A stretch of DNA of 42,180 bases from Octopus bimaculoides (Eukaryota): NCBI RefSeq assembly GCF_001194135.2, contig NC_068982.1, positions 123,288,779 to 123,330,958 on the forward strand. Reading direction: 5' to 3'. The notes under the pieces were generated by a model. That model made no database searches. It was not told the origin of the DNA and saw only the letters and a program-made list of their open reading frames with translations. Below are positions 2,899 through 41,125 of this stretch, in pieces. A program made the translations under genes and the position numbers. Position 1 is the first letter of the stretch; every line of letters begins with the position of its first letter.

Positions 2899-3363
2899 AC
2901 ATGTGGTTGTTCAGGTGACAAAAAATATGAAGGACACAATGTACTGACAAGGTAACTAATGCACGTTTGTTTGACTTGCCAGAAATAGCTACAAAATCTC
3001 CTTCAAATCATTCACTTTCATTCCAAACATGGACTGTGACGTTCCACTTTGGAGNNNNNNNNNNNNNNNNNNNNNNNNNNNNNNNNNNNNNNNNNNNNNN
3101 NNNNNNNNNNNNNNNNNNNNNNNNNNNNNNNNNNNNNNNNNNNNNNNNNNNNNNNNNNNNNNNNNNNNNNNNNNNNNNNNNNNNNNNNNNNNNNNNNNNN
3201 NNNNNNNNNNNNNNNNNNNNNNNNNNNNNNNNNNNNNNNNNNNNNNNNNNNNNNNNNNNNNNNNNNNNNNNNNNNNNNNNNNNNNNNNNNNNNNNNNNNN
3301 NNNNNNNNNNNNNNNNNNNNNNNNNNNNNNNNNNNNNNNNNNNNNNNNNNNNNNNNNNNNNNN

Positions 3364-7350: not shown

Positions 7351-8021
7351 TGATTTTATGAGTGGAAATATTAAGTCTTACCAAATCCGCGGCCAGCTCC
7401 CAGTATCCCTTCTATCTTTTGTCTATCTCGTATATTTTATTTGGAGGCCTGATCTTATGTCATTTTCCCTCCTTCTGGAAGCATATCCTTCCGCGCTTTT
7501 CCACTTTTGGGTACTCTCCCCTATTATATCCCTCGATCTTCTCCTTGAGTGCTGCGCTTATTACACCGAAGACTTGATTGTATATCTGTTTAGTGCTAGC
7601 TTGCAGTTTGACAGAACATGTCTTACCGTCGCTTTCTCTCCGCATCTACATTCATCAGTGGTTTGTATGTTCCACCGGACTAAATTGGCCGGTGAAGTCA
7701 AAACTTCGAAGCTAGACTTGATCAGGAAGGATGGTCTTGCTTGTTCCCAAGTCCAAAGTTCCTTCCATGAGATTCTGCGACTGACCACATATTCCTCCCA
7801 TCTCAAGTACTGTCCGTGTCGACTACATTGCACCTTTCTTTTTTCTCCTTTCTCACTTTGTGTACCACTGCTTCTTTCATCACTTTTACACTGCTCATGC
7901 AAAATGGTTTGAAATTGTGCAACCCTAGACCGGCTATTGCTTCTTGCGTTGCTCCGACTATATCGGCATGCCTTAGCTTTCCGATCGCGCTGTTTACTGC
8001 TTCTTCCGCTTTCCATTTCCT

Positions 8022-8693
8022 CTATGTTCGTACCTTTGTGGGATTTTCTCGGATGTTCTGATCTTTCGAATACCTTAGCATCATTACTGTCCTCGCCTTT
8101 CCTGCTTTATATTCTTCGACGATTGATATTATCGGTAGTTGCAGCATAGATTTTCCATATAGTGCAGTTGTATTCAGTGGTTTAGGAAGACCGAGCCATT
8201 TTCTTATAAACACATTGCGCCTTTGTTCCATCCTTTCTACTCTACTCGAGACTATTTCATACATTTGCAATGGCCACATTATCCTTGGGTACAGTCCAAA
8301 TTGCAGTATCCAGAATTTGAATTTCCCCAGTAATGTTGTTCTGTCAATTGCCTTTAGACCTTGTTCCACTAAATCGTGTGTTTCTTTGCGTTGCTTCTTA
8401 TCATTTAGTAAATCTCTGTACCATCTGTCGAGACGCTTTACTGGTTGTTCTTTCACCGTTAGTATATATTCACCTCTTATCCTGAACTTCACTTCTTTTT
8501 GGACTCCTTTCGCGAATGCCACACTTAGAGATTTCTTAGCTTTGAATTTCATTCTTGCCCATCCTATCATTTCGTCCAACCGCTCTAACGTTTCATCTGC
8601 TGCTTTTCTACTTTCTGACAATACAGTAATGTCGTCCATAAAATTCCTTGTAACAGATTTCTCACAGTTTGTTGATCTTAGTAACATCTCCAT
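8022..8693 (-). pseudogene. Reverse-transcriptase C-terminal half of the HERO-like LINE
   Basis: ORF contains FMDD, MKFKAKKS, WPLQMYE and RKWLGLP motifs. Confidence 0.85.
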
Positions 8694-11600
8694 GATNNNN
8701 NNNNNNNNNNNNNNNNNNNNNNNNNNNNNNNNNNNNNNNNNNNNNNNNNNNNNNNTGCTGCTTTTCTACTTTCTGACAATACAGTAATGTCGTCCATAAA
8801 ATTCCTTGTAACAGATTTCTCACAGTTTGTTGATCTTAGTAACATCTCCATGATTAGCACAAATAAGATGATTGATATCGTGCATCCAGCTGCAATACCT
8901 ACTTCTCGCCGTTGTCACTCCGTTGTGAACTTTCCTCAATTTATCGCAGTAACACACCAGCATTCGTTGAACATCTGGAATCCAAAAGAAGTCCATAGCT
9001 GCTTGAATCTGTGCGTGTGGAATAGATCCATATGCGTTGGCAAGATCTAGCCATACAATGTACAGGTTTTTCTTTAGTTGATGATAGCTTTCCAGATGGC
9101 AAATGTATGTTCTATGTATCCAGGGATCCCTGCCTTCTGGATTGCTTCACTAACATATCTGTTATGCCATACGAATATTATGATTCGCCTGGCAATAATT
9201 CCATACATGATCTTCCCATCGATATTTAGCAGTAAAATGGGTCTGAAATACCCTAGTGTTTTTTGCCCCTCTCTCTTTAGGTAAATAGATACATTCAGTT
9301 ATACACCATCGTTATGCTACGTCTTTCTTCTTCCACATTTCTCTTATCAATACAAATAGTCGTAAACCCAATTTTGGGAAATACCAATAAACCTTGTAGC
9401 CAACTCCATCATTCCCTGGTGAACTTTTTGCTCTTGCTTTTCTAATGAACTCATCCATTTCTTTCCGTCTGATGTCACTCAAATCGAATGGCACTCTTGG
9501 CTCAGGTGGTTTCTTCAGCCTGAGCATTTCTGGAAGTACTTTATTTTTATCAGCGTCGCCGTTTGTCTCTTTAAGATTGTGTTCGAGCTCTTCTTCCGCT
9601 CTTACTTTCAGTAAAGAAACGTTTAGCATATTGATACAGGTTGTTTACAAAACTACAATAGTTCTTTTCTCTCTTCTTTTTTTCTGTTCTTCCTTCTTCC
9701 TTCCTAAGTTGGTCTCGATGCCGCTTTTTTATCTCTTCGTGTAGTTGTTTTGGATCTTCTCTTTCCACCCCCTTTGCATCCCTCCATCTGGTCCTGAGAT
9801 GTTTCTTCTCTTTTCGTATCTTTGCGATCCGTATTTCTCTCCTCGATGGTCCGCCCTTTGCCGATGATTCTCCATTCCCTGTTGCTTCAAGTCCATATCG
9901 TTTCTCTCCTTCCCGATAAATTATGTTAACCAAGTTCTCGAGCTTTTGTTCGTCGTCACCTTTGAATTTGGTGGTCATTCTTACTACCTCGTCGTCGAAT
10001 TTCTTATAGCTAGCTGCATCATTTGCCTTCGGCCACTTAATCTTTGGCTTCTTCATGCCTATCTCTTTTTATTACTGTCTCATTGAATTTTATTTTATTG
10101 GCTCCATTATTAGCATCTTATGAATTGCATTATATTACTATTAATTCTTTTACACGTTCTTTTATTTCCTGCTGATAATTTTGGTGTTATTTATTTGTTA
10201 TCTGAAGTATGTATTAATGGCACTCACCCATTTTCCCCAAGACTTTTGCCTAGAAGTGCTTTATGGATCTTGCTAAGGTGATTTCGATTGAAGAAAAATG
10301 TCTATCCACTGCCCACCTTCAGCAACAACTCTATCGTGAAAGAAATTGTGAATCTTCAAATATATTTCATCGTATAATTTTTACCTCGTCAGAAGGTTTC
10401 ATGTAAAATTTTAATTAGATGTTAGAAGCTACTTTGGATATGAAAAAAAACCCATCAAATTGATTTTCCATATTGAAGATTCTGTAATATGGCACTAAAT
10501 TTAAGGTGTTTGATTTGTTTTTAATGCTTGAAAGAAGTCTATTGAGTGGATATGTTAAATTCCTATAAAATGTTAACATGTTACACGTTTGTGAAGTTCA
10601 ACTTCACAAACGTGTAAGATGAAAATCTTTTCAGTCGCCAGTAAAATGGTTTCTATTTAAGAATTGATATAATAAATTTACAAATGGATAAACCTTTTAG
10701 AACTGAGGAATGGAGAGGTCAATGATAAACAACCAATTCAAAATCGATTTGATAAACACTGTGAGAACATTAAATTTTACTCTCACTAACATTACCATTT
10801 AATTACTTGGCCTGTCTGTCTTAAAATTTGAGTATATTAAAGTAGAAAGAAGAATGATCAAAAGATCAGAAGCGCAATTCACTAACTCACTAACAGAGGT
10901 GTTGCAAACAAGGTAACTTGTTGAAATTGTTGGAGTTGAAACAGATCTTAACTAACACTTCTGCAAATTCTAATGATTATAAAACTCTCATGAAAACAAT
11001 TTACAATGGTTGCAGATCAAGGCACTCGAGTTATTTAGCAACCAATAGTGACATCGAAATCTCATCTATTTCTGGTGCTGTTCAAAATAATTTATGACTT
11101 TAAATCTTTAGTATGGCCTTTAAGAAGAGTAATTTTTTTTTTAATGCGATGTTCAAAAGACGATGGTAATTTCTCTTAGTTAATTAAACAGATACTTCAA
11201 CGGGATGGACCTCTCATCGTTATTTTAAATTTTAGAAATCCCGTAACTGTTATAATCAGAAATAGATGTTTTTTTTTCATCTGCATTCTTTCCATTACGT
11301 GTGACAAGCGGCAGCAACTGCAGCAGCAACAGTAACAAAGACTCAGGTGAAATACAGACGAAACAAAGCATTTCACTTGGCCGTGTTCAACCCTGCTGTC
11401 TTAACATTACACACTATTTCCCGGAGATGTGCTGATACATATATTCCTTCGACATAAACAAATTGAGAACATCACTGTTGGAAACAAATAATATTAAACA
11501 TTGAAATGAATACAGTTTTCAGCACGTACATCGCCGAGTAGCCCATAGAGTGGATGGCGAGAAGCAAATTCATGGATCACAAACAATATCCAGTTCATTA

Positions 11601-12327
11601 AGACTGGAATACTTTATTTCATTTGAAATTACAAGTAAGTAAAAACGATAAATAATGATGCCATTGTTTTATTCTTATAGTTATATTTGTTTGGCCATTG
11701 ATCGTATCGTTATTTTCATTTGAAAATACATAAATTTGTAAATAAATAATCAGCACACAGTCAACTAGAACCGGAATATGAAAAAGATAAAGAAAGAATC
11801 CGTTTATATCAAGATGGCAATGACTGTCTGTTTTTAAAAAGTGTTCTAACTAAATTAACTAAGTGTAATGCAGTGTGTCCATATGTGTAGCTGAGAGGAC
11901 ATTTTCGTCAACCATTTCCGTCTGTTATTCAACTTAGCAAAAAAGTAATCACTGTTTCGTGGTTTCTTGATGGAAATTATGAACATAATAAATATTGATT
12001 ATTTTTTCTCATTATATGGAGGGTCTATTGATCATGGGGAAAGGCTAGAGTTAACTGAATAGATTCCGATATTTATTTTATCGAAATAATAAATATCTTT
12101 TCATTGGTAAATCCAGCTGAATGTTGAATTAACTGATAATAGTCGTCTACTGAATGAGCTGTTGCAATAGAAGTAATCATCAAGTTATAGATGTTATAAG
12201 TAAAGACAAATTTCTCGTGAAAGAGAAAGAATAAATCCATTCGTAGAATCTGTCGGTAGTATTATTAATAGATAATAAATATAAATAAACGACTGAATGA
12301 ATCTGAAGCATTAAGCTATCTTTAGAC

Positions 12328-12369
<42 letters not shown>

Positions 12370-12489
12370 GAGAGAGAGAGAGAGAGAGCACATCTTAATT
12401 TGTTTGAAACAATTGTGAGTTTGAAATATCTTGACGAATGAGAAACCATTTTAGACTTTAAGATGGTAGATTTCAAAGTGTAGTAACAT

Positions 12490-13155
12490 CTATTTTTCAA
12501 GATCTGACAAATGAATTTTTCCAGATGGTTCCAATCTTGTTACTGTTGGAGACAAATAACCACTGTAACGATTTCGAAATCTGCTCGTGAATACTCTTCC
12601 CGATCGTTTCCTTTCATCAACAGCTGGAGCCGCAACCATTTGTTCAGCTTCTCTTTTTGAGACCAACTTGTCTAATCGCCTTTCTAACTGGAATGCTTTA
12701 TACTGTCTTAGAAATTCCGGCAGTAAAGACCTTTCGTAATCTGCCGACATTGTTGATGTTGTAGGCTCGTAGTCTTTCTTCAATAACATGTATCGGTAAC
12801 GATTGGCAAACGCACTCTCTGGTGAGACAGCTAAGCCGTCGTTTCGATTAAGTACAACATTACCACTTCGTATGTAGAGCTTCAAGAGCTCCATCACTTC
12901 CCCTTGACAATGATCGTTGTCTCTCAGACATTTTTCACAAAGCATGAGCGCTTGAGGCTGGATGCAACACTTTGATACAAGTGGTTGCAAAGTTTTTGGC
13001 AGCTTGAAACACGACGAACATATGACTTCTTTCACTGAATTGGCTGGGCAGCCTTGTCTGCCTTCCGAAACTCCGACGAATACAAGCTGAATTGTAAAGC
13101 TCAGAATAAGGATATTGATTAATGTACCACCAACAAGACTATATTTAGCAGCCAT
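12490..13155 (-). CDS. Secreted cysteine-rich neuropeptide/prohormone-like precursor (221 aa, one coding exon)
   Basis: Uninterrupted, non-repetitive ORF ending in TAG. Hydrophobic N-terminus (LINILILSFTIQLVFVGVSEG) fits a signal peptide cleaved near G32/R33. All 8 Cys fall in aa 36-83 (C-x9-C-x2-C-x13-CC-x8-C-x2-C-x6-C). KK126, RR159, KR167 and RKR182 are convertase-type sites. A polypyrimidine tract plus TAG acceptor directly precedes the ATG. Confidence 0.85.
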   Translation of the reverse strand: MAAKYSLVGGTLINILILSFTIQLVFVGVSEGRQGCPANSVKEVICSSCFKLPKTLQPLVSKCCIQPQALMLCEKCLRDNDHCQGEVMELLKLYIRSGNVVLNRNDGLAVSPESAFANRYRYMLLKKDYEPTTSTMSADYERSLLPEFLRQYKAFQLERRLDKLVSKREAEQMVAAPAVDERKRSGRVFTSRFRNRYSGYLSPTVTRLEPSGKIHLSDLEK

Positions 13156-13185
13156 CTAAAAAAAAAAGAAAGAAAGAAAACAAGA
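13156..13185 (-). promoter_or_regulatory. 3' splice acceptor of the intron upstream of the precursor ATG
   Basis: Minus strand reads cttgttttctttctttctttttttttttag|ATGGCT: a long polypyrimidine tract plus AG abutting the start codon. Confidence 0.8.
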
Positions 13186-13380: not shown

Positions 13381-13596
13381 GTGGTGGTGAACTGGTGAAG
13401 TCGTTAGTACGTCGGGCAAAATGCTTAGCGAATTTCGAACGTCTTTACGTTCTGAGTTCAAATTCCGCCGCGGTCAACTTTGTCTTTCATCCTTTCGGAG
13501 TCGATAAAATAAATACCAGTTAAGCAGTGGGGTTAATGTAATCGACTTACCCAGCCACCGAAATTATTAGCTTTGTGTCAAAATTTGAAATCAATA
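13381..13596 (+). mobile_element. SINE family A copy inside the precursor's upstream intron
   Basis: gttagtacgtcgggcaaaatgcttagcg...gttctgagttcaaattccgcc...ctttcatcctttcggagtcgataaaat. Confidence 0.85.
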
Positions 13597-14163: not shown

Positions 14164-15288
14164 TGTATATATATATAGATATATCTTTTGCTTGTTTCAG
14201 TCATTAGACTGCAACCATGCTGGGTACCACCTTGAAGAATTTTAGTCGAACGAATCGACCCCAGTACTTTTTAATGCTTAGTACTTTATTCTGTTACTAT
14301 ATTTATCCAAGGCTATGGCTACTAAGTAAGAATAGAACTGAAATGACAAATATTTCGTTGCCTAACAGTTAACCTTACTAATGAATTACTCAGTGTCTCC
14401 AGGATCCATAAAGGTTATAGGATTTACCATATTATAGTCAGCGATTGCAGGTGGTATTTTTTTTTTACCATTTAGTCAGAAAGAAAAGCAACACATGTAA
14501 CCCTTTCTTGGATTTCGAGATTGGTGGGAGGAAAGGAGAAAGGTATCCTCAAACCGGAGACCTAACCTGATTGTTTGTAACAGAGTGAACTTCACTAAAG
14601 GGAACTAAGTACTAATTAGTGGGATTAAACAGGACAAAAGATTAAGCTTTCCACACAAGAAGGCCACAGCAGAATTTGTACTCAGAACGTAGAGAACCGG
14701 GACATACAATGCAAGGCATCTCACCTAATGCTCTTGCGTTTTTCACCAGTCATCCCTCTAGAGAGGTACTTTATAGTTTCCAATTTCACCTGGATTAAAA
14801 TCTTTGCCCACTTTTTTTAAAAGAAGCAATGATTCATTGAATAATGTAATCGTTGATACACCATATCTTGTAAAAAAAATATATTTGATCATAAGATTTG
14901 TTGGATCAAAGATGAGGCTAAACGACGGCGACAATAACAACAACATCGACAACCTTTGCTAAATGAATATCTTTAGTCCTTGATACATTTTTGTATTATA
15001 CCATCTGTCTAATGCTTCTACTGCTAATAAAGATCAGCCTTGTGACTATGTTAGGAATCACGTTCTTTTAAAATTCTTTTTTTTACTTCAGTTTTTGGCG
15101 TCGGCCAGGCTCAGTCACGATCACTGAGTGTCTTTAGTCGTTTGTAACAACCCTAGTATTTAACCTGATACTTGTTTGATCGATTTTGCAAAGGACGAAA
15201 AGCAAAGCTAATTTGCGTAAAAATGAAAGTTAATAAGATAGAATTAAGTATCAAAGCATTTTTCTTCAGCAAACTGATTCTGCCACAT

Positions 15289-15389
<101 letters not shown>

Positions 15390-17075
15390 ATATGTATAGG
15401 TGTAGGAAATGGGGACGGTAAATCCCTACATATATTTCCAAAAATAAGCTGAACATAAGCTATATAACTTAAAGGTTAACACATATATTTAGCTTGACTT
15501 TACTTCAAGTATTTTACCTACAGTTTACAAGTTCATTGCGACAATCACTTGTAAAGCTACCAGAAAAAAAGTCCAGCTCAATATGTTACACCTTAAAGTT
15601 ACGTAACACCTGTTCAACTTTTCTTGGAAACGTATGTCGTGCTTTGTACGTATTTACCTTCTCCATTTCCTACAACTATCAATTTATAATTGCATAATTT
15701 GTCATTTTCATTGCTAAACCATGCGTTGTATAATTGCAGTCTTCTGATCGAAATTTCCATTAAATTCGATATGAGACGAAGTATGTAACACACGTTGATG
15801 AATAAACGTTGTTGATCAAGTATTATCTGCTTTAGGACATCTATATAACCGTGTATATGCTTGATATTAACTAACTGCCTGTACCAAGATCCTTTTGGAC
15901 TGTACCACTCTCTCCTTCTCTCTCTCTCTATATATATATGCATAGATGTGTGCGTGTGTGTGTGGGGGGGGCGTGTACACACTCATACATGGAGGCTAGC
16001 GTGCAGTTTCCAGCTAACAAGTTTTACTGAAGTTGATTGGGTCGAACCGAGGGTATAGCAAAAGACAGTTTCCGAAAATACCATGCAGTGAGAACAAACA
16101 GGTATGTCGTGGATGCTTACCAACCTTTCAACCATTCCCAGTTAAGTATTCCATGTGATTTTAGGTAATTCTCTCATAAATATTGCCAGCACATTTTAGA
16201 AATTAATTGATAACTAAATCTTCCTTAAATCTCTCTCGACCATCTTAAAAGACGACGAAGACATTGAAAAATTTGTTCATGGATACAGGTGGACAGTGAA
16301 AGTAAAGATGCGATGGTCACAGCTTGTATGTTGTTGACGATAGATCTGCTCGATCAGGGTTAACCTGCGTTTAAACAATAATCACGAAATATGTAATCAT
16401 CACATGTCGATCTGAGGAACCTATATTCTGTTGCCAATATTATTACATATGCTAGAGAGGATATGAAATCTAATTTTGATATCGAAATTTAGATTAGCAT
16501 ACGTTGGTGTCTAGGAAATAATACTATATGCCATATCGCTTTATAATATTAATCATAATATCTCACTTATTTCAGGTGTTCTAATGAGAAACATCTTAGA
16601 TAAAGTATCATTTGAGATTTCATCTGAAATTTTATTTCCATCCTGACAGGCTTTAACCGAGACACTAACTGTAAGCAACAAAAATATAAATTATTTTGTT
16701 AGCAATCTTGCCAACAGACAAACTGGCTTACATTCTCTCAGCAAAACATGATCTAGTGGGAACGGCTACTAAAATACCAGAGATCTTGTTGAAGACTGGC
16801 AATATACAATGAAGATCATTCTTGCAGAATAACAGATCTATTCATTCTTAATGTATTCTGTCAGATTCGAACGTGAATGTCTGATTGCTAGTGTTTTTCA
16901 TCATCGGAGAATATCTCTTTCTTTCAGACGATGTGTTTTGATAACGCGCAATTCCCCTCAGTCAGGGAGCTAACTGTGTGGCTCCTCAGTCAATGTTACT
17001 TCTGCTACATCTGATCTCTTATCAACGGTAATAGAATATCCCCCCGAACATTTCATCATCCGTTTGATACACTAC

Positions 17076-18157: not shown

Positions 18158-18659
18158 AAGAGAGAGAAGATCAATACAGAAGATTTGATACGACGCAATA
18201 TTTAATTTATCACCAAGAAAGCAAGTTTGTCATAGTTAATAGTGATGGATTTGAACCGGAATATATCTGAGAACACAACTGGTATTATTACCACTACTAC
18301 AATGACTGGTTTCACAGTTATTATTTTTTTTGTTATTGTGGTTGATGTTATTGTTGACGTTAGCTCGATATCAAATTTATCACCAGGAACTAACACCGCT
18401 GTGGTTTATTGCGTATGTTGTAATAATGAAGTCTCACAGGGAGGTTTAGTCAGATAAGGCCTAAGTCTAAATAACACTGACAATAGTCGTTGACGAAACT
18501 GCAGATATGTATGTATGTATGTATATATGTATGTCTATATGCATGTATGTACGTGTATTTATGTATGTGTATGTGTGTGTATGTATATATATACACACAC
18601 ATATATATATACATATATACATATACATATATATATACATGTATATACATATATATATG

Positions 18660-18754
<95 letters not shown>

Positions 18755-19176
18755 GCGCGTGCGTACACACACACACTTCTAAAGCTGCAGTTGTTATCTG
18801 TAAAAAGAAAGCCAGAAAAATGCAGGCGGTGTGCTGCTTATTCAAGGAAATTATAAGAAACCCAAAATGGCTGATTTTCTTTCTCTTTTTTTTCCATAAT
18901 TAATCTATTTTCATACATAACAATAATGCTGACAGTTTGAGAAATATGATTATAGCCTAAAATATTCCTTTCTACTCTTCCCTGAAATATTAGAAAGTAG
19001 TACCTAGCTCTCCCCTATTAAATTCGTGTAGTTCACTGTTGCTTCAGCTATGTTCTTTCTCCCTTTCTTCTCTGTCATTCGCTTTCTCTATCTTTCTCTT
19101 TTTGCTTTGTAGTCTTTGTCGCTTGCACACTTTTTTATTCCTATTTTTCTTTTTTTTTTTCTTCCTTTTGTTATTG

Positions 19177-19340
19177 CATGATTGTGTGGTTAAGAAGCTC
19201 GGTCTGTAACTACGTGGTTTCGAGTTTCAGTCCCACCACCCGGCACATTAGGCAACTATTTTCTACACTAGACCCGGGCCAACTAATGCTTTAGGAAAGA
19301 ATTTGTTCGACGGAAACTGTGTGGACGCCATTCGTGTGTA

Positions 19341-19390
<50 letters not shown>

Positions 19391-19615
19391 ATATATGTGT
19401 ATATACGTGTGTGTGTGTGTGTGTATGCTGTATATATGTGTATATACGTGTGTGTGTGTATATATATCTCGTGGTCATGACTGACCACGGGATTGTACCT
19501 AGAAAGTTACTCTCCCTGGCACAAGTCCGGGCAAGGTTGTTTATGGAAGACCAGCAGTCACCCATGCATACCGGCCTTTCCTCTCCACGCCACCAGTGTT
19601 ATCCAACTCATTTCT
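19177..19615 (+). mobile_element. Diverged family-B-like SINE split by (TG)n/(TA)n arrays
   Basis: Head tgattgtgtggttaagaagc...ttcagtcccacc, then gacggaaactgtgtggacgccattcg, a microsatellite, and a 3' module. Confidence 0.6.
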
Positions 19616-19702
19616 ACATCTGAGTGAACTGGAGCAACGTGAGATAAAGTGTCTTGCTCAAGAACACAACACGTTCTAACCACTGAGCCATGCGCCTTCA
19701 CG
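19616..19702 (-). mobile_element. tRNA-derived SINE head (family D) with internal deletion
   Basis: Minus strand gtgaaggcgcatggctcagtggttagaacg (A-box TGGCTCAGTGG) joins directly to gtgttcttgagcaagacactt; the B-box is missing. Confidence 0.6.
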
Positions 19703-19879
19703 TGTATATATATACATTATTCAAAAGAATTCCAACTCTGTCTGTTTTTTATGTTTTATTTATATTCTTATAAAATTAATGTGGGATATAGAATATGGAA
19801 TATATAGTATATATAGTAAAAGGAAATGAAGTATTGCATGTCTTATTGAATAAATGAAATATTGAATATTAAATATATA

Positions 19880-19970
<91 letters not shown>

Positions 19971-20451
19971 TTGTTTGTGTGTATGTGTGCGTGTGCGTGT
20001 GTATGTGTACATGTATGTGTATATATGTGTGTGTTTGTGTGTGTGTGAGAGAGAGAGAGAGAGAAGAATACTTTGTACTTGTATTTGTACCCCTACACCT
20101 CCTGACAACCGGTGTTGATTCGATTACGCCACCATTACTTCGTTGCTCAGCAAAAACGGCCAGAGTAAGTACCGGAGTCGATATGTTCAACTAAACCCTT
20201 AAAGACGGTGCTCCAGCATGACAGCAGTTCAATGACTGAAACAAGTGGAAGACAAAAGGATTACACATACGCCCGCACCTGCACACATGCCCACTCACTC
20301 ACCCAAATTTACACACAAAGGTTCCACCGAAAGTAATGCAAAAGTAAGCATGACATTTTAACTGCCACACGTCGTTCAAATAGCACATTGCTGGTAGAGT
20401 AACTCTTCCTTTCCCATAAGTCTTCTTGGTCTACTTCATTGCAGAGAAATA

Positions 20452-22040: not shown

Positions 22041-22155
22041 AAGATATTATTATTATTATTATTAACAATAACAATAATATGAGTGGCCAGCAAGCGTTAA
22101 AGCCAAGAAGGCAAATTCATAAATTTATAAATTTATTAATTAATAATGAATTATG

Positions 22156-22209
<54 letters not shown>

Positions 22210-22384
22210 TGTGTGTGTGTGTGTGTGTGCGCGCGCGCGCGTGTGTGTATGTGTGTGCGTGCATGTGTGTGTGCAAATAAACGATTAAAAAACAGGAAAA
22301 CCAAACAAAAGTCAATTAGACGTACACATTGAATATAATTAGATTGATGCTTGGTGAAATTTTTTGAAAAATAGGTGTGGAAAT

Positions 22385-22600
22385 GACGTTTCGAGTATGG
22401 CTCTTCATCGGAAAGAGGAAAACGTCCAGAGAGGAGGAAAGGAAGGATGGAGCAGATAGTCTGGAGAAGAGCACATGTGTCATTGGAGAGAGGGTGAGAG
22501 GGAGAGAGAAGGCGAGGGAAAGAAGAGGAGAAGGCTAAGGGGAGAGAGAGAGGGGGAGCAAGAGAAGAGTCTTTTTCATTTACTCTTCTTTCCACTAATT
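22385..22600 (-). mobile_element. Penelope-like pseudo-LTR remnant with hammerhead-like core
   Basis: Pyrimidine-rich minus strand ending CCGATGA-a-GAG-ccata-CTC-GAAACGTC. Confidence 0.55.
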
Positions 22601-23039
22601 TTGAAATCGAATGGAAGAGATTTTCACTCATTTCCTTCACATGGTTATTGTATCTATTTTTTTCTCTGTTTCACTCACATTTCATGACTCTTCACTCTAG
22701 CACACACACACACACACACACAAGCACACGCGCACACACAGACGCACACGCACACACGCGCACACACAGACGCGCGCGCGCGCAGACACACACATACGCA
22801 CGCATACGCGCGCACACACACGCGCGCGCCTCAGGAACACTCCAGCTTTCTCTCTTTTTCTCGTTTACTTTTCTCTCAGACACATTATGCCTTTATCAGA
22901 AGACAAATTTAGCAAAGAAACCGATAAACAGGAAAAACTATATAGGAAAAGAAACCATAAAAGCAAGCATTCAGATTTCATAAAGTTGACTCCATCAGCA
23001 TTGTGCTCTTTTGACAAAAACAATTTTGTTTGTGTCTCA

Positions 23040-23083
<44 letters not shown>

Positions 23084-23617
23084 CAAGACACGACGGTGTT
23101 CAAGTTTTTTTAAATTTCTATTAAAGATTTTTCATTATTTCTTTTTAATTAGTTCTTGCTTAATACATAAACGAGACAATAAAACCGACCTGCTGTCTAC
23201 ACGCCGTCAAGAAGATGAGACCGAGAGAGAATAGAAATGTTAATGAAAGGNNNNNNNNNNNNNNNNNNNNNNNNNNNNNNNNNNNNNNNNNNNNNNNNNN
23301 NNNNNNNNNNNNNNNNNNNNNNNNNNNNNNNNNNNNNNNNNNNNNNNNNNNNNNNNNNNNNNNNNNNNNNNNNNNNNNNNNNNNNNNNNNNNNNNNNNNN
23401 NAATGAGAATGACTATAAATGTTAATGAGGAGGACTATAAATGTTAATGAAAAGGCCAAGAAACGTAAATGGACTGAATGTTGTAATTTAAACATATAGA
23501 ACTGATAAGAAAATATGGAAAAAAAATTCCTTTATTAAAAAGATTAAATGCAAACATATTTAAAAGAAAAGCTTTTCTTTATACACACACACACACACAT
23601 ACACACACACACACACA

Positions 23618-24201: not shown

Positions 24202-25215
24202 AAGTACTGTCCAAAAGAGAAACTGTTAAAAAAGAAACAAGTTAATTGATTTACTTTTAATTAGACTTGTCTCTTTCAAAATAGTCCCCTCTACATTTGA
24301 TACACCACTCCCAATTTTGAAAGTTTTCTGGAACATGTTTTCAGGGTTAGTACGCAGTTTTTGTAACGAATTATCGTCGATATCTTTTATCGCCTGAAAC
24401 TAGTTGCTTCGCAGGGGGACTTTCAATTTTGGAAGCAGAAAAAATCTTCAGGAATTGAATCTAGAGAGCAGGGTGAGTGATGATGATCCAACCTACTGCG
24501 ACGGCTGTCGTTTGGTTCCAACATTAGTGGTACACCAACGTTTAGTCGTCACCTGATGTGACACTTTCCGGGAAGTTTCCATAAGCGTTCGAACAATCAA
24601 ACAACTCCCGTCTGGTCGTGACTAGAGCCCAGGGGCCTCATAAGTCTAGGGAACAATTATGATCTATGTATGCAGTGGCTCGCTTTCAATAGATATATAT
24701 TACAGGACCAGTGCATTGTTTAAAAATTTGTGGCACGAAGTTTTGCACAGGCCTACTTCTTTAGAAACTTCACGGATAATCAGGCGACAATATTCACTGA
24801 TCAAAGCACACACTGTGTGAACGTCGTCTACTATCCTATAAGGTTGCTCAGAATTGGGATAGTCTTCGGTAGATGTTCTTCTCAATTTCAAATGCTGGTA
24901 TTATTCGTGATATTGTGCACGGTTCAAACAATCTCCTCCATAGGATTGTTGCAGCATTAGAAAAGTCTCAGTAATTATTTTCCCAAATTGAAACATAATT
25001 TCACATGAATACCCTACTCGTCCAAATCCTTCATTGTTCAACTGGGGACAAATTACCAAGTGTAGTTGACATACTTCACTTTAGCTCATGTAGATCGATG
25101 ACTAACTGTCGATGGGTGACGCGGTTATCATTAATCTGAAGGCTATGGTTACCCATACACAGCACTGCGCCGGCTCGTTGATGCATTGTTTTAAAAGGCG
25201 GATCTTTTATACACA
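24202..25215 (-). mobile_element. Second mariner relic (different subfamily, heavily decayed)
   Basis: Minus-strand fragments: VKLCFNLGK..TETFLMLQQSYG; RTSTEDYPNSEQP; CRLIIREVSKEVGLCKTSCHKFL; DFFLLPKLKVPLR. TIR-like ends are weak. Confidence 0.7.
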
Positions 25216-25643
25216 CATATATGTTCACTTAACTACATCTGAATATAAATACAACTGCATTCATACATGCACATATAAACACGTCCACGCGCGCACACGT
25301 ACACACACGCACATACACACACACACACACACACTCACACACACATACGCACACACACAAATGCATATTCATATTTTTTGTGCGTGTGTATATATGTATG
25401 TATGTGTGTGTGTACATGTGGTATGTGTATGTGTAGATACACACATACACATACGCACACGTGTACACAGATATTTAAGAAATAGTTCAATATTAGTGTT
25501 TGTACATTTGAAATAAATTGGACTTGATAGATTACATAAGAAATAGAATTCTTGATACGGAACATTCACTATGAATGTTGACAGTTACATATTTCCTGCG
25601 CAGAAAACTTACTGTGCATTAGGGTGGATGGAGCTCACACACA

Positions 25644-25645
<2 letters not shown>

Positions 25646-25700
<55 letters not shown>
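25646..25700. repeat. (TATC)n tetranucleotide microsatellite
   Basis: Uninterrupted tatc array. Confidence 0.95.
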
Positions 25701-25704
<4 letters not shown>

Positions 25705-27514
25705 GGTCTGTCTGTAATGTGTGTGTGTGTATGTATATGTACACATACATACATATATGTATGTATGTGCGCATACATAATACATACATATATATGTAAA
25801 TTTGTCTGTGTTGACTACATCACAAAGATGGAGCCTTATATCTTTGTTGGAAACCGGCTCCCTCCTCAGTGGAAGAGACATACAAACATAGAAGAGACGT
25901 ACATACATACATGCATACATAAGCATGCACACTCGCAAACGTATACACACTTGCTCGCACGCACGCATGCATGCACACACCTTTGAGTTTAACTGCACAA
26001 CGTTAACCGCAATCGTTCTGGCTTTACTGAGATATTCGGCAAAGTTATGGAATTTCTGCACAAAAACGAGTAATATCGGCATTTTAGGACACTTCATAAT
26101 TCCTTTTGTCATTGTTTTCAAAACGAGCATCAAACGGTTTCAGTTAATAAAATCCCATCAACAAAATCTCACAATTCGGTTGTTCACAATCATATTGTTA
26201 AATTCTTCAGTTGAAGTGAGCAAATATGCGAAGTAACTGCGTAAACCTGATTGCCAACGTTTTTCTGCGTATTCTTTTAGTCTTTTGTTTCTTTCAGGCA
26301 TTGGGTTGCAGTTATGCTGGAGCAACATCTTGTGCGGTTAGCCGAACAAATCGTTCTCTACATATTTTAAGTCTGGAATTTATCCTCTTTTTTTTTTTTT
26401 GTGGAACCGCTAAGTTACAAGAATATATAAAGAAGAAAACAATCAGATGTTGTCAAGCAGTGAGCTGACAAATACAAAGACACACATGCATACCAAGTTG
26501 AGTTAAAAATGATCGTATTTCAAGCTTTAATTAATAGTTCAAACAAATTACATATGAAAAGCATTTATTCATCAAAATATATCCCCTCATACTCTATTGT
26601 CTCTTGCCATTGTTATACCAGAAGCTAAATTCCACACTTACACCATTTGGCTGGTTTAGAGGCAAACAATAACCTACACCCGTTTTCAGCCTCATTAGTT
26701 TGTGAACCTCTTAACCTCATAGCCATACCTGGGCCTCTACAGAATAACATGAAAATCATTTCAACAATTTTTTCCCTGCTCAACGCTATGAAATGGAAGT
26801 TTTCACTGAATTAGTTTACACGACTCAGAAGCAAAGAATCATTCTTGAATTTAAAATCTTGGCAATCACAATGCCTGGTGTTCTATACTTTCGGAACAAC
26901 ATTAACTGTCTGACACTCACGTGTTGTGAGATATCAAGTTGGAATAAATGTCATTCCTTTTTGTTTTATATGTGGGCGTTCAATTCGAATAAGAAACCTT
27001 ATTTTATGATCGCACACACAAGAGATTAATTGTCATCTTAAGTTAATGTTCAGAGATGATTCAAACTGACATGTCATTTTCTTTCTATATACAGATGTAT
27101 GTATATGTATATATGTGCGTAATTATGTGCTCACAGGCATTTGATTTATATAGAATATCTTGGTGAAGTTAATTCATCGCTGAGGACAAACAAAATTACT
27201 TTTATAAAACCATCGTTTTATAACAAAACAATATTTACTGGAACCCACTCATTGGTTGCTGTCTTATCATACAGTTTTATCAAGTAGCTTTCATTTGAAC
27301 TTGAGTTCGATTATTCTTGATAATGTTCAATTCCACACACTTCTCAGAAGAGGCGTATTATCTCATAAGTGCAAGCAAGATATTTTAACTTGACTGTCGT
27401 AGAGAGTTGTAGCATTTAAATAGTTAAATATCGTGTTCAGCCGATTAATAAACTTCTACTAGATGTCTAGTACTTACTTCATCGACCCTCAAATTTATCA
27501 CAGACAGAGAGTCA

Positions 27515-32853: not shown

Positions 32854-33058
32854 AAGGTGGCGACCTGACAGAACCGTTAGCACGCTTATCAACATTTTGT
32901 CCGTCTTTATCTTCTGAGCTCAAATTCCTCTGAGGTTGATGTTCCCTATCCTTTCGGCTTCTATAAAATAAGTACTAGTTAATTTACTGGAGTCGAATTA
33001 ATCGACTCGCCCCTTTCCTCAAAAATTGCTGGTTTTGTGCCAAAATATGAAGCCGTTA
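32854..33058 (+). mobile_element. SINE family A copy
   Basis: aaggtggcgacctgacagaaccgttagcacgc...ttctgagctcaaattcc. Confidence 0.8.
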
Positions 33059-33449
33059 TTTTTTTTCCATGTAACCTCTCCCGAGATAGCATCAGATTCG
33101 ACCATTTCNNNNNNNNNNNNNNNNNNNNNNNNNNNNNNNNNNNNNNNNNNNNNNNNNNNNNNNNNNNNNNNNNNNNNNNNNNNNNNNNNNNNNNNNNNNN
33201 NNNNNNNNNNNNNNNNNNNNNNNNNNNNNNNNNNNNNNNNNNNNNNNNNNNNNNNNNNNNNNNNNNNNNNNNNNNNNNNNNNNNNNNNNNNNNNNNNNNN
33301 NNNNNNNNNNNNNNNNNNNNNNNNNNNNNNNNNNNNNNNNNNNNNNNNNNNNNNNNNNNNNNNNNNNNNNNNNNNNNNNNNNNNNNNNNNNNNNNNNNNN
33401 NNNNNNNNNNNNNNNNNNNNNNNNNNNNNNNNNNNNNNNNNNNNNNNNN

Positions 33450-33511
<62 letters not shown>

Positions 33512-34106
33512 TATTAAAAAATTAACTACTGCAAGTTAGAGTTAGTTTCTTGCACGACGCACAGAAGAAAATAACTTTCCAGATACATCGATTGTGAATA
33601 GCGTTAAGAAACAACGAAAAGAAAGATTTACTGTCTCTGAAAATAAGAAGGTTATAGAAAACAGAGAAAAAGGTAACATTCAACTCTTATTTATAGAAAC
33701 ATAAATATATTTATGAAATGGTTTCGCAGTAAAGCTTAACGTACATAAACTGATTGTTTTTTTTCTTCATAATATATCCGTATTGTTTTACATACATCAT
33801 TCGGCCAATTTTTCATTGCTTTTTTAGAACTAGCTCTTTGTAATAAAGTCAAGTAAGCATCAATTAGACTTATGGTTTTGTAAGTCGTATTGGTATCTAT
33901 GACACAATACAATATAGGCATTACTTTGCTACTTTTCATCTTAAGCTTCATTGGCTCGGAAAATCCTATATTCCGGTTGCTGTCTAGTCCCGGGTTTTGT
34001 TTGAGGTCTACACTGTATTATAACATTACTAAATGTAAAAACTGTCACAATATATACGAGGCATACCGGTCTCATACACACACAGGTATACATATACACG
34101 CATAAA

Positions 34107-34157
<51 letters not shown>

Positions 34158-34237
34158 GTAATTGTTATGATAAATACGCAGAATATCGACGAATAATTGT
34201 ATGTAGGCGTAAGGATATGATTAGCTAAAAATACCAT

Positions 34238-34833
34238 AGAAATAATACAAGCGAAATTTGAGGCTGAGAGGAAACAAACAAATAAAAGATATCGCTCTGA
34301 ATCAGACAGGCGAAACCACGTGCCTGAAAAGAGTAGAGATTAAAAAAGAGTAAAAGGCAAAAAGCAACGAAACAGTCTACAATAAATCCCAATATGTCAA
34401 AGGAGGAAATAGAAGGGAATCTAACGTTTCGGGAAATATATTTTATCAAGGAGAAGAAAAAAAACGCGAAAAAAAAAGAACTGTCAGTCAGGAGAAAGAA
34501 AAAAAGCCTATACAATTATAATAAAAAAGACATCTTCACATGACAAATCTCAGATAGACTTCTTGGATATCGTTCGTGTTTTCATTCTCCCACCTCTTAA
34601 TTCTTGTTTTCTATTCCTTTTTTTCTCTCTCTTTGATAGAGGTTATGATCTGAAACATCAGATTCTTTTTAGCTTCTTCCTTTGCTGTATCGAGCTTCAC
34701 TGTATACGTCTTTGTTATTTTTTTTTGTTTCTTTTCTTACGATTTTCAGGCATCAGCTTTACCTGCCTGACTCCGCGTGTGTATTTTGTTTCTTTGTTTC
34801 CCATTTGCCTCAAATTTTGCTTATGTTATTTCT
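34238..34833. repeat. ~600 bp degenerate inverted repeat (arms ~265 bp, spacer ~70 bp)
   Basis: 34238-34505 aligns collinearly with the reverse complement of 34579-34833, roughly two-thirds identical by eye (e.g. aaatttgaggc, tgcctgaaaa, gcaaagga..a, gaatct.a.gtttc). Confidence 0.8.
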
Positions 34834-35974
34834 GTTGGTTCAGTCCCACTGCGTAGTACCATGGGCAAGTGTCTTCTGCTATAGCCTCGGGCCGACCAAA
34901 GGCTTGGGAGTGGATTTAGTAGACGGAAACAGAAAGAAGCCCATCGTATATATATATATATATATATATATATATNNNNNNNNNNNNNNNNNNNNNNNNN
35001 NNNNNNNNNNNNNNNNNNNNNNNNNNNNNNNNNNNNNNNNNNNNNNNNNNNNNNNNNNNNNNNNNNNNNNNNNNNNNNNNNNNNNNNNNNNNNNNNNNNN
35101 NNNNNNNNNNNNNNNNNNNNNNNNNNNNNNNNNNNNNNNNNNNNNNNNNNNNNNNNNNNNNNNNNNNNNNNNNNNNNNNNNNNNNNNNNNNNNNNNNNNN
35201 NNNNNNNNNNNNNNNNNNNNNNNNNNNNNNNNNNNNNNNNNNNNNNNNNNNNNNNNNNNNNNNNNNNNNNNNNNNNNNNNNNNNNNNNNNNNNNNNNNNN
35301 NNNNNNNNNNNNNNNNNNNNNNNNNNNNNNNNNNNNNNNNNNNNNNNNNNNNNNNNNNNNNNNNNNNNNNNNNNNNNNNNNNNNNNNNNNNNNNNNNNNN
35401 NNNNNNNNNNNNNNNNNNNNNNNNNNNNNNNNNNNNNNNNNNNNNNNNNNNNNNNNNNNNNNNNNNNNNNNNNNNNNNNNNNNNNNNNNNNNNNNNNNNN
35501 NNNNNNNNNNNNNNNNNNNNNNNNNNNNNNNNNNNNNNNNNNNNNNNNNNNNNNNNNNNNNNNNNNNNNNNNNNNNNNNNNNNNNNNNNNNNNNNNNNNN
35601 NNNNNNNNNNNNNNNNNNNNNNNNNNNNNNNNNNNNNNNNNNNNNNNNNNNNNNNNNNNNNNNNNNNNNNNNNNNNNNNNNNNNNNNNNNNNNNNNNNNN
35701 NNNNNNNNNNNNNNNNNNNNNNNNNNNNNNNNNNNNNNNNNNNNNNNNNNNNNNNNNNNNNNNNNNNNNNNNNNNNNNNNNNNNNNNNNNNNNNNNNNNN
35801 NNNNNNNNNNNNNNNNNNNNNNNNNNNNNNNNNNNNNNNNNNNNNNNNNNNNNNNNNNNNNNNNNNNNNNNNNNNNNNNNNNNNNNNNNNNNNNNNNNNN
35901 NNNNNNNNNNNNNNNNNNNNNNNNNNNNNNNNNNNNNNNNNNNNNNNNNNNNNNNNNNNNNNNNNNNNNNNNNN

Positions 35975-36017
<43 letters not shown>

Positions 36018-36019
<2 letters not shown>

Positions 36020-36570
36020 GGCTGCCTACTCGTGATTGGGGATGACTATCACTGATCATTGCCCATGGATGAGGTTATTGCACCAGTAGTCGGCTTCACA
36101 CGGGTTCGTGTTTACGGCTTCAATGCTCGCTCCGGCGCCCACCCACTCGACCTCTTATGAACTAGTCGGCTCGCAGGCAATTGCACAACCTAAAAGTTTA
36201 AGTCCAATAAGGTTTCTACAGCAACTCACTGATTCTCTCTACGCTATCGACATAATCCAGAGACAAGCCAGGACAAGACATCCTGTACAAATATGGGTAG
36301 TAGGCCCATTTTGTCAGGTCACTTGTAATATCGCACCAGTACACCCTGTTGTATGGTCGGTTCGTCAGGGACTAAACAGGCCTCCCCTACTAGGCTTGCT
36401 TGGTAAAGAGGGTTGCTAGAAGCCGAACAGGACTAAAAACAAGACCTGTCAAAAGGACGGACGAACCTAGTTTACGCTAAATGACTATCTAACAATTGCA
36501 CAAGCCCTCATAAATACCAGGCTGGTGTCCGACGTGGTGGAAGACCACTGAGAGTGAAGCATATCTTAGC
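36018..36570 (+). mobile_element. Probable 5' UTR / ORF start of an RTE-like LINE, truncated
   Basis: GC-richer block with ggttgctagaagcc..ggactaaaaacaagacctgtcaaaaggacggacgaacc, resembling RTE 5' UTRs as I recall them, ending in RGGRPLR. No endonuclease follows. Confidence 0.4.
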
Positions 36571-37429
36571 TTTTATTAAAGCATGTCTCTTGGAGAAGGC
36601 CACCCGGATATAAAACCAGATATGCCAGGAATGACACTGAATATTTTGGGGGATGTTTTGCCTGCGCTTAAGATCAATGGTGCTCCCATTTGCCTGATCC
36701 ANNNNNNNNNNNNNNNNNNNNNNNNNNNNNNNNNNNNNNNNNNNNNNNNNNNNNNNNNNNNNNNNNNNNNNNNNNNNNNNNNNNNNNNNNNNNNNNNNNN
36801 NNNNNNNNNNNNNNNNNNNNNNNNNNNNNNNNNNNNNNNNNNNNNNNNNNNNNNNNNNNNNNNNNNNNNNNNNNNNNNNNNNNNNNNNNNNNNNNNNNNN
36901 NNNNNNNNNNNNNNNNNNNNNNNNNNNNNNNNNNNNNNNNNNNNNNNNNNNNNNNNNNNNNNNNNNNNNNNNNNNNNNNNNNNNNNNNNNNNNNNNNNNN
37001 NNNNNNNNNNNNNNNNNNNNNNNNNNNNNNNNNNNNNNNNNNNNNNNNNNNNNNNNNNNNNNNNNNNNNNNNNNNNNNNNNNNNNNNNNNNNNNNNNNNN
37101 NNNNNNNNNNNNNNNNNNNNNNNNNNNNNNNNNNNNNNNNNNNNNNNNNNNNNNNNNNNNNNNNNNNNNNNNNNNNNNNNNNNNNNNNNNNNNNNNNNNN
37201 NNNNNNNNNNNNNNNNNNNNNNNNNNNNNNNNNNNNNNNNNNNNNNNNNNNNNNNNNNNNNNNNNNNNNNNNNNNNNNNNNNNNNNNNNNNNNNNNNNNN
37301 NNNNNNNNNNNNNNNNNNNNNNNNNNNNNNNNNNNNNNNNNNNNNNNNNNNNNNNNNNNNNNNNNNNNNNTATATATATATATATATATGTATGTAATGT
37401 GTGTTTGTGTTGGGGGTTGAAATCAAAAA

Positions 37430-38330: not shown

Positions 38331-39797
38331 CAAGTGCAATAAATGGGTGCGGGTAAAAAGTTATTTTACCATTAATTTATATAGCAATAAGAAAATGGAG
38401 GGATCAATAGGTGGTATTCATCAACTTATAGACATTGTATTGTGTCAATTTACTTGTTTATTTGTTTACTAAAAGTATAATAATAACAATATACAAACAC
38501 ATGTGACATATTAGGTCATATAAATTGGATGAGGGGACTGAACAGCAAAAATAACCCCTCCCCACTACCAACAAGGTTCCAACTACTCCATAAACAAAAC
38601 AATAACGGAGTAACTCATCACATGTTTATAGAAGTTTGGATATTATTGTTAGAATTCTTACGAACTAATTGTATAAATTCCTCCATTACAAATACAACTA
38701 ATACGTATGTACCTATGAACATGTCTGTACGGAAATGTTTATGTATACATATGCGTATGTATGTATGTGTAGGCGTGTATATATATATATATATGTGTGT
38801 GTGTGGGGGGGGGTGTCCTCCTCATGTATAATAATAATAATTGATTCATTTGTGTGTATGTATGGACATTTGTGTATGTACATTTAAATGTACATATATG
38901 TATTTATGTTTTTATGTTTATTTATGTATATCTATGTATATGTTAAAGTATTCATATATATATATGGGTTTTTACGGTTTTCATATTTTTTATATTTTTA
39001 ACTTAACTTTATGAACTTTATAAAATCTCTGAAGATGCCTAGAGAATCATCCATGTACCTCTATTTCATCTATTTCATCTATTAATTACTTCAGTCTACT
39101 GGAGTGATAAAGATAGAATGAGGCATATCACCTCCAGACTGAAACAGCTGTAAGATTATCTCATTTTCTGTCACTATATGTCATTTCTATAATTACTGAT
39201 ATGACATAATATATCACATATGTTTGTATATTGTTATTATTGTCCTTTTAGTAAACAAATAAACAAGTAAATTGACACAATACAATGTTTGCAAGTTGAT
39301 GAATACCACTTATTAATCCTCTCCATTTTCTTATTGCTATATATATATATATATATATNNNNNNNNNNNNNNNNNNNNNNNNNNNNNNNNNNNNNNNNNN
39401 NNNNNNNNNNNNNNNNNNNNNNNNNNNNNNNNNNNNNNNNNNNNNNNNNNNNNNNNNNNNNNNNNNNNNNNNNNNNNNNNNNNNNNNNNNNNNNNNNNNN
39501 NNNNNNNNNNNNNNNNNNNNNNNNNNNNNNNNNNNNNNNNNNNNNNNNNNNNNNNNNNNNNNNNNNNNNNNNNNNNNNNNNNNNNNNNNNNNNNNNNNNN
39601 NNNNNNNNNNNNNNNNNNNNNNNNNNNNNNNNNNNNNNNNNNNNNNNNNNNNNNNNNNNNNNNNNNNNNNNNNNNNNNNNNNNNNNNNNNNNNNNNNNNN
39701 NNNNNNNNNNNNNNNNNNNNNNNNNNNNNNNNNNNNNNNNNNNNNNNNNNNNNNNNNTATATATATAAGTATATATATGTGTGTTCGTGTGTGTACA

Positions 39798-39831
<34 letters not shown>

Positions 39832-40474
39832 CTATACTATACTATACGTATATGTGTATGTATTTTATTGTGATAGCCAGAGACGCCATGTGTGCGGGGC
39901 ACTGCATTCGTACGTCTATGTGTATATGTGTATGTTCTAAGTGATAACGGATTTTTTTTAATTAACATTTTTTTATTTCCTGTTTTTCCTGTTATGATTG
40001 GATACAGCACAGCCAGGGGACTGTGAAGTCTTGTATAATAATAAATGGAGAACAGGACTTTCGTTTTCTTAAAAAAGAGAAGCGAGAAAAAGAAGAGAGA
40101 ATAATAACAAAAGACACTACTACACATTCATGCGCCAATAAAATTTTAATCCAGTTATAGTATGCCCTTGTGGTTCCACAAGAGGTAACAATAGAGGATT
40201 ACTTCTCATTTTTAAACTCATAGTAAAGCATCCACTTTTTATAAAATTCATCTTGCTTACTTTTATTGTAAGATATGTATTTTTTTTTCAATAAGATACT
40301 TGTCCTGAACATAGTATCTAAAATGTTTGAGGCTAAGAGTGGATTTTGATACTTGGCTTTCGTATATAAAAAATTTTGCTAATAATACTAGCAGGTCAAG
40401 GATAACTGATTTGTTGTGTTCGTTTTTGGTTTTGGTTTTGTTTCAGCGTACAAACGTCCCTTGAGTTTTATGTG

Positions 40475-40512
<38 letters not shown>

Positions 40513-40822
40513 NNNNNNNNNNNNNNNNNNNNNNNNNNNNNNNNNNNNNNNNNNNNNNNNNNNNNNNNNNNNNNNNNNNNNNNNNNNNNNNNNNNNNNNN
40601 NNNNNNNNNNNNNNNNNNNNNNNNNNNNNNNNNNNNNNNNNNNNNNNNNNNNNNNNNNNNNNNNNNNNNNNNNNNNNNNNATCTCCTGCTCTTTCTGTCC
40701 TTTTCTATACATCGGTCAAACGGGATGTCGCTTGGCTGACCGGTTCGCGGAACACCTCCGAGACATCCGACAGCACAGGTACATAAACAGGAGTGAACAT
40801 ACACACCCACACATATATATAT

Positions 40823-41125
40823 ACGAGCCCACAACCTACGAGACCTCTTGGTCCACAGCTTCTTCCCTAACCCAACCTCCCAACCCGGCTCGTTCCCCTG
40901 CTCCTGCCCACGCTGCTGCACTTACCTCTCCAACACCACCCTCCTCACAGGCACTCATCATCGACCCTATCATATCACTGACTCCTTCACCTGCACTTCT
41001 AGCAACGTCATCTACTGCATCTCCTGCTCTTTCTGTCCTTTTCTATACATCGGTCAAACGGGATGTCGCTTGGCTGACCGGTTCGCGGAACACCTCCGAG
41101 ACATCCGACAGCACAGGTACATAAA
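40823..41125 (+). mobile_element. Penelope-like element GIY-YIG endonuclease fragment
   Basis: RAHNLRDLLVHS...GSFPCSCPRC...FTCTSSNVIYCISCSFCPFLYIGQTGCRLADRFAEH. Embedded in TA/CA microsatellite; its 3' part is repeated at 40681-40822. Confidence 0.9.

Follow-up and report, generated by a model that had tools for sequence, protein, structure and literature searches.

Does a tight cluster of eight cysteines in an octopus genome mark a genuine secreted protein, and if so, of what kind? The question is raised by a window of 42,180 nucleotides of Octopus bimaculoides DNA (contig NC_068982.1, positions 123,288,779 to 123,330,958; the coordinates used below are those of the window). On its minus strand, translation of 12490..13155 gives an open reading frame of 221 amino acids and a stop (MAAKYS...DLEK*), contained in one coding exon that is documented by the list of reading frames, its translation and RNA contigs from eight runs; an identical protein is already present in public collections. 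The cysteines lie at residues 36, 46, 49, 63, 64, 73, 76 and 83, with none elsewhere, and are spaced C-x9-C-x2-C-x13-CC-x8-C-x2-C-x6-C over 48 residues. A sequence-only reading had claimed this pattern at 12907-13059, and translation and alignment show the claim to be exact: the segment corresponds to residues 33-83 on the minus strand.

Elsewhere in the window, cysteine-dense reading frames come from the translation of (TG)n/(CA)n microsatellites, so that cysteine density alone is uninformative here and conservation is what informs. Microsatellites of the (TA)n, (TG)n and (CT)n types are abundant, together with runs of N at assembly gaps (1-600, 12330-12390, 15290-15400, 18450-18900, 19260-20200, 22140-23500, 25100-26000, 33000-37400 and 39300-41600), and they give rise to many spurious frames rich in Cys, Tyr or Ile. 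Degraded reading frames of a non-LTR retrotransposon, broken up by N runs, occupy 7561-10056 on the minus strand, about 2.5-5 kb downstream of the 3' end of the gene; the one at 8022-8693 matches the C-terminal part of the RVT_1 reverse transcriptase with an E value of 3.4e-5, below the gathering score. We found no second copy of the cysteine pattern and no paralogue in the window or in a 20-kb Argonauta locus, and the available data show one copy only.

The gene is transcribed and spliced

Near-identical sequence occurs in at least 18 RNA runs of one organism, drawn from five studies. The sequence-only reading had named a lack of expression as grounds for dismissing its proposal; instead, spliced RNA contigs lie over the coding exon in all eight runs that we examined, covering 12400..13155 without gaps and without differences. 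Every contig in these runs departs from the genome precisely at 13155 and enters an exon that is absent from the window. On the minus strand, bases 13156-13157 read AG and are preceded by a pyrimidine tract. Thus, an intron ends immediately 5' of the ATG, its 3' splice site (13156..13185, minus strand; acceptor AG at 13157-13156) abutting the start codon. The same layout, ...tttag/ATGGCT, is seen in O. vulgaris and in Argonauta.

Seven of the eight runs share one upstream exon, GTCGACAATTATATTCTGTAATGTAGTGCG (plus strand). In the remaining run the 5' exon is another one, ...GAAAAATTTGGATAA/ATG; it ends ...GGATAA/ATG and so places an in-frame TAA directly against the ATG, and its use suggests an alternative promoter or first exon. 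Neither 5' exon was found in the window, and the one used by a single run is also absent from the O. vulgaris and Argonauta loci that we fetched. As both lie outside the window, the first intron must exceed 29 kb in the window species; it spans 40 kb in O. vulgaris and 6.2 kb in Argonauta.

Downstream of the stop codon, RNA contigs define a 3' untranslated region at 11576..12489 (minus strand), with depth equal to that of the coding contigs and a break only at the (CT)n(TA)n repeat at 12330-12390. The contigs end at 11698 (two runs), 11659 and 11576, which suggests alternative poly(A) sites; reading the sequence directly, we find AATGAA at 11720-11715 and AATAAA at 11673-11668.

The cysteine domain and the C-terminal 55 residues are under strong purifying selection

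All eight cysteines are invariant across four orthologues, the window and Argonauta use different synonymous codons (TGT/TGC) at three of the eight, and dN/dS in the domain that holds them, computed by the Nei-Gojobori method for the window protein against Argonauta, is 0.04; the pattern is therefore not due to chance. By the same measure, dN/dS is 0.14 for the whole protein at a dS of about 0.9. The regional values define two constrained modules: the entire conserved cysteine and helical domain (aa 33-100; 12856..13059, minus strand; dS about 1.6) and the C-terminus (aa 167-221), at 0.07. The signal segment and the linker (aa 101-166) are relaxed, at 0.29 each, and synonymous divergence across regions ranges from 0.6 to 1.6. 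The C-terminal 55 residues, conserved like the cysteine domain and bounded by conserved KR and RKR sites, had been overlooked in the sequence-only reading.

To whom is this protein related? A word-indexed search recovered orthologues only from Octopus vulgaris/sinensis (97%; 'uncharacterized protein LOC115231982') and Argonauta hians (77%). The 90% cluster further includes a 271-aa O. vulgaris model, an orthologue derived from Logan and the protein of the window itself. A profile HMM run against 1.84 billion representatives yielded no further genuine relative. It did return a 2400-aa bacterial repeat protein, which we rejected as it matched aa 77-117 through summed repeats. A four-sequence profile taken to E values of 10 found just the two known clusters, and the 74-aa cysteine domain by itself gave zero candidates in the word-indexed search. 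Scans of Pfam (to E 10) and NCBIfam produced sub-threshold noise only (zf-UBR, E 0.3; tRNA ligase, E 0.21), and PDB sequences, searched by phmmer and by profile, gave no significant family match, only LIM noise.

Across Pfam, the PDB sequences and the profile search of 1.84 billion, then, no clear orthologue of a characterised peptide emerged. The description of the domain as uncharacterised also holds: databases call it only 'uncharacterized protein LOC115231982' or 'hypothetical predicted protein', and neither its accession numbers nor its peptide strings turned up in the literature. On the data available, the gene appears restricted to incirrate octopods. That squids and cuttlefish lack it is only weakly supported, since none of the searches ran directly on a cephalopod genome.

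Signal segment, fold and resemblance to known families

Where the protein begins bears on where it goes. The O. vulgaris model of 271 aa (CAI9718020.1) adds 50 residues from two upstream exons (3002-3075 and 10518-10592 of the O. vulgaris locus, L002), and with such an extension the signal peptide would be mistaken for an internal anchor. We rejected this isoform as a prediction artefact: the acceptor AG that it needs reads AA in Argonauta, where the upstream frame also contains a stop. In addition, the final 45 nt of the main 5' exon have no in-frame ATG in either O. vulgaris or Argonauta. Together, these observations place the conserved start at MAAKYS, which stands in a good context (GACATGG), and the 50-aa extension is probably an error of annotation.

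From this start, residues 1-32 (13060..13155, minus strand) are predicted to form a cleavable signal peptide, with an n-region MAAK, a hydrophobic core and a c-region SEG/R. Kyte-Doolittle hydropathy peaks at 2.0 over aa 7-25, with K4 before and S30-E31-G32 after, and the 221-aa protein has no second hydrophobic segment. The eight-cysteine domain thus stands directly behind a signal-like segment, as had been proposed. The hydrophobic stretch is long in Octopus, about 22 residues, which counts against a cleaved signal and a prohormone. In Argonauta, R28 trims the core to about 16 residues, leaving the small residues S30 and G32 at -3 and -1, and since R28 shortens the core we think cleavage of the signal peptide likelier than anchoring.

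The length of the Octopus segment and its hydropathy of 2.0 could otherwise be read as a membrane anchor, either in a type II protein with the 50-aa cytosolic N-terminus of the 271-aa model or in an N-terminally anchored protein whose CxxC pairs would bind zinc in the cytosol. One O. vulgaris gene model does carry the extra residues, the two CxxC pairs lie 23 residues apart, and there are weak matches to zf-UBR (E 0.3) and to the LIM domain of FHL1 (E 0.006 against the PDB). We consider this very improbable. The extension is not conserved, given the missing acceptor and in-frame stop in Argonauta; RNA contigs enter the upstream exon by only 19-63 nt; the alternative 5' exon has an in-frame stop; and R28 shortens the hydrophobic core. 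As for zinc, the ligand register C-x2-C-x16-23-H/C-x2-C of LIM and zinc-finger domains is absent and the LIM Cys ligands are out of register, the zf-UBR score misses the cut-off, His82 is variable (Asn in one orthologue), and zinc-finger proteins are absent from the exhaustive profile search. We rejected the FHL1 match (phmmer E 0.36 with the single sequence, 0.006 with the profile) as compositional, as it aligns a CxxC to LPKT.

We modelled the domain alone (aa 31-100) with AF2, using four near-identical sequences. The model is all-helical, with five helices (pLDDT 74.9, pTM 0.55); the full-length model was unusable (pLDDT 36). The sequence-only reading had guessed at a helical, disulfide-stapled fold, and the helical part of that guess agrees with the predicted structure. 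Structures of the CHH family are present in the PDB. A Foldseek search of the domain model (pLDDT 75) against the PDB had a best E value of 8.4 and returned no CHH-family chain, short helical peptides being hard for Foldseek; against BFVD it gave noise only.

These comparisons matter for the suggestion that the domain resembles the CHH/ITP superfamily. Members of the CHH/ITP/MIH family (PF01147) have six cysteines spaced C-x15/16-C-x2-C-x12-C-x3-C-x8-C, with disulfides 1-5, 2-4 and 3-6, and in the type II CHH peptides the hormone domain immediately follows the signal peptide. The octopus protein is alike in that a small, secreted, all-helical, hormone-like domain with several predicted disulfides appears to come straight after the signal peptide, with a CxxC in a helix, a further Cys 12-13 residues on and an eight-residue loop between cysteines. 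Moreover, hhalign sets C46, C49, C63 and C76 on CHH C23, C26, C39 and C52, which would amount to two of the three CHH disulfide pairs, and E-x2-C-x2-C-[FY]-x-L-x-[KR]-T is common to both. The octopus domain differs in having eight cysteines rather than six, and hence an extra pair, in a CC where CHH has C-x3-C, in a first loop of 9 rather than 15-16 residues, and in a C-terminal pro-region of 120 aa. Only the x2 and x8 loops coincide, the other three of five differing in length. The hhalign probability against a CHH sequence not drawn from a database record was 1.7%; no Pfam hormone family matched at E values up to 10, none appeared in the 1.8-billion profile search, and neither sequence, profile nor fold gave a significant match. 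The proposed likeness to CHH/ITP thus finds no support. Nor could we substantiate a likeness to RFLamide or FLGamide precursors: the literature on RFLamide and ITP in molluscs yielded nothing on this gene.

Eclosion hormone (PF04736) is likewise secreted and helical, has three disulfides and contains a C-x2-C, and homologues have been reported in molluscs (PMC8398477). Its spacing is different (C-x3-C-x2-C-x12-C-x3-C-x10-C), its Pfam family was not matched, and hhalign gave 0.3% against a sequence that again was not drawn from a database record. That the octopus gene belongs to the CHH/ITP/MIH or eclosion-hormone group as a strongly diverged member is, in our estimate, highly unlikely.

Among molluscan peptides, clionin offers another comparison. 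It is a mollusc-specific, Cys-rich peptide precursor found in Tritonia, Aplysia, Crassostrea and a cephalopod, Sepia officinalis (PMC8398477). Like the octopus protein, it is a small, secreted, Cys-rich molluscan precursor of unknown function, and both have [ILM]-C-x-x-C-F soon after the signal peptide, near the start of the mature protein (ICSSCF here; ICSICF, QCSNCF, MCNICF and ICHNCF in clionins). The alignment is limited to seven residues at ICSSCF, at a profile-profile probability of 8.7%. The rest of the cysteine framework is different: clionins open with A-C-L-x-C-x-x-C-F and keep their cysteine framework over about 60 aa; they have C-x2-C-x2-C, six or seven cysteines and no CC doublet, are shorter (about 92-114 aa), and carry neither a long C-terminal pro-region nor a C-terminal peptide framed by dibasic sites. 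Aplysia and oyster clionins, which are NCBI proteins, were not recovered by the profile searches. We give least credence to the idea that the gene is the octopod representative of this family. The membrane, zinc-finger, CHH and clionin readings are each unlikely.

Predicted products and promoter

If the protein is secreted, is it processed? Conserved dibasic sites are found in both Octopus and Argonauta at 126-127 (KK or KR, depending on the species), RR159-160, KR167-168 and RKR182-184. The less conserved linker (aa 101-166; 12658..12855, minus strand), delimited by alignment, dN/dS and a dibasic scan, contains KK126-127 (12775-12780), RR159-160 (12676-12681) and the conserved island F116-x-NRYRY122, which would close the first product; we give no weight to its loose likeness to F-R-NRY-SGY in the last. 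Beyond the linker, at 12604..12657 (minus strand), lie KR167-168, the acidic 13-mer EAEQMVAAPAVDE (aa 169-181) and RKR182-184, two candidate convertase sites and the peptide between them, invariant in Octopus and Argonauta apart from E169V. The protein ends with the 37-aa basic peptide SGRVFTSRFRNRYSGYLSPTVTRLEPSGKIHLSDLEK (aa 185-221; 12493..12603, minus strand; pI 10.4), in which 32 of 37 residues are identical in Argonauta. Conserved dibasic sites thus flank conserved peptides, and the spacers are less conserved (dN/dS 0.04 and 0.07 vs 0.29), as is characteristic of neuropeptide and peptide-hormone precursors.

The interpretation that we favour, with about even confidence, is that the gene encodes an octopod-restricted (Octopus, Argonauta) orphan precursor of secreted signalling peptides, a predicted secretory pre-pro-protein with a single coding exon. 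A signal peptide of about 32 aa would direct the protein into the ER, and four disulfides between the eight cysteines would staple together a small all-helical domain of about 68 aa. In a regulated secretory pathway, prohormone convertases would cleave at KK126-127, KR167-168 and RKR182-184, and possibly also at RR159-160. Cleavage would free a cysteine-domain protein of about 10.5 kDa (aa 33-125; predicted mass 10.46 kDa, pI 8.7), the acidic 13-mer (1.36 kDa) and the non-amidated C-terminal peptide (4.26 kDa). As the most strongly constrained parts, the cysteine domain and the C-terminal peptide would be the candidate extracellular ligands. The protein has no N-glycosylation sequon. Counting against a prohormone, it contains no G[KR][KR] amidation site and no repeated peptides, and Glu at P4 of RKR182-184 means that this site does not fit the furin consensus.

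Proenkephalin, with its synenkephalin region, and N-POMC are prohormones in which an N-terminal disulfide-rich domain is followed by dibasic-flanked peptides. By analogy, the octopus precursor has a signal peptide, a Cys-rich N-terminal domain, a variable spacer and peptides set between KR and RKR. It has no sequence relationship to these prohormones and, unlike them, has neither repeated nor amidated peptides; in addition, its cysteine domain is conserved as strongly as its peptide and may itself be a ligand. Judged by such analogy, the closest functional match may be prohormones with an N-terminal disulfide domain, together with helical disulfide hormones.

The putative promoter is conserved as well. 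Over about 240 nt of the promoter and non-coding exon 1 region (10480-10600 of the O. vulgaris locus, L002; 3670-3790 of the Argonauta locus, L001; both in locus coordinates), O. vulgaris and Argonauta are 85% identical, much more than expected of neutral sequence at a dS of about 0.9. In this comparison, the two species have in common an inverted CCAAT (ATTGG), a perfect CRE (TGACGTCA), TATAAAT and a donor GTAAGT. Transcription appears to begin at this conserved promoter, with its inverted CCAAT, CRE and TATAAAT elements. Two contigs, however, run 63 nt into the 5' exon and, by the coordinates of O. vulgaris, pass the TATA-like sequence on its upstream side, which makes both the transcription start and the role of that sequence tentative. 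Promoters of the CRE/TATA type are common in neuropeptide and hormone genes.

The same secretory features would equally suit a Cys-rich protein that is no hormone at all, such as a gland, egg-coat, pheromone, antimicrobial or salivary/venom product that acts intact or through its basic tail. The absence of an amidation site and of repeated peptides fits such a product, as does the C-terminal tail with its pI of 10.4, and contig depth differs more than 10-fold among runs of one study (18.8 and 19.7 vs 244.5), which fits tissue-specific expression. Molluscs also have lineage-specific, Cys-rich secreted peptides outside the nervous system, including clionin in Sepia oocytes and CCCGS in the oyster (PMC8398477). 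Four conserved dibasic sites, with an acidic spacer between two of them, are more easily explained by processing. The gene is, moreover, single-copy and its protein evolves slowly (dN/dS 0.04-0.07), unlike typical toxin and antimicrobial families, which are fast-evolving and multi-copy, and its CRE/TATA-type promoter also speaks against a non-hormone product. We regard this alternative as rather unlikely, though second only to the signalling precursor. Were the gene to make a gland or egg product, it would be an ordinary taxon-restricted secreted protein.

Returning to the signalling precursor, its constraint has been strong since the split of Octopus and Argonauta, and the gene offers a compact, testable hypothesis with defined predicted products. 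The nervous and endocrine systems of cephalopods are thought to depend in part on lineage-specific genes, few of which come with a clear molecular hypothesis. A bolder version, tentative and a good deal less than even in probability, is an octopod-specific neuroendocrine system in which a new four-disulfide helical fold of about 10 kDa would be co-released with the 37-aa basic peptide under a cAMP-responsive promoter. If true, the animals with the most complex brains among invertebrates would have a lineage-specific invention in signalling. If the product is a hormone, it would provide a new ligand family for receptor deorphanisation and a marker for a secretory cell type.

Two tRNA-like, SINE-like copies (...GTTCTGAGTTCAAATTCCGCCGCGGTC...), at which neither ARAGORN nor Rfam made a call, are present at 13442-13480 and 14657-14695. 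They are inverted with respect to each other, are 79% complementary, and lie within the long first intron, a short way 5' of the coding exon.
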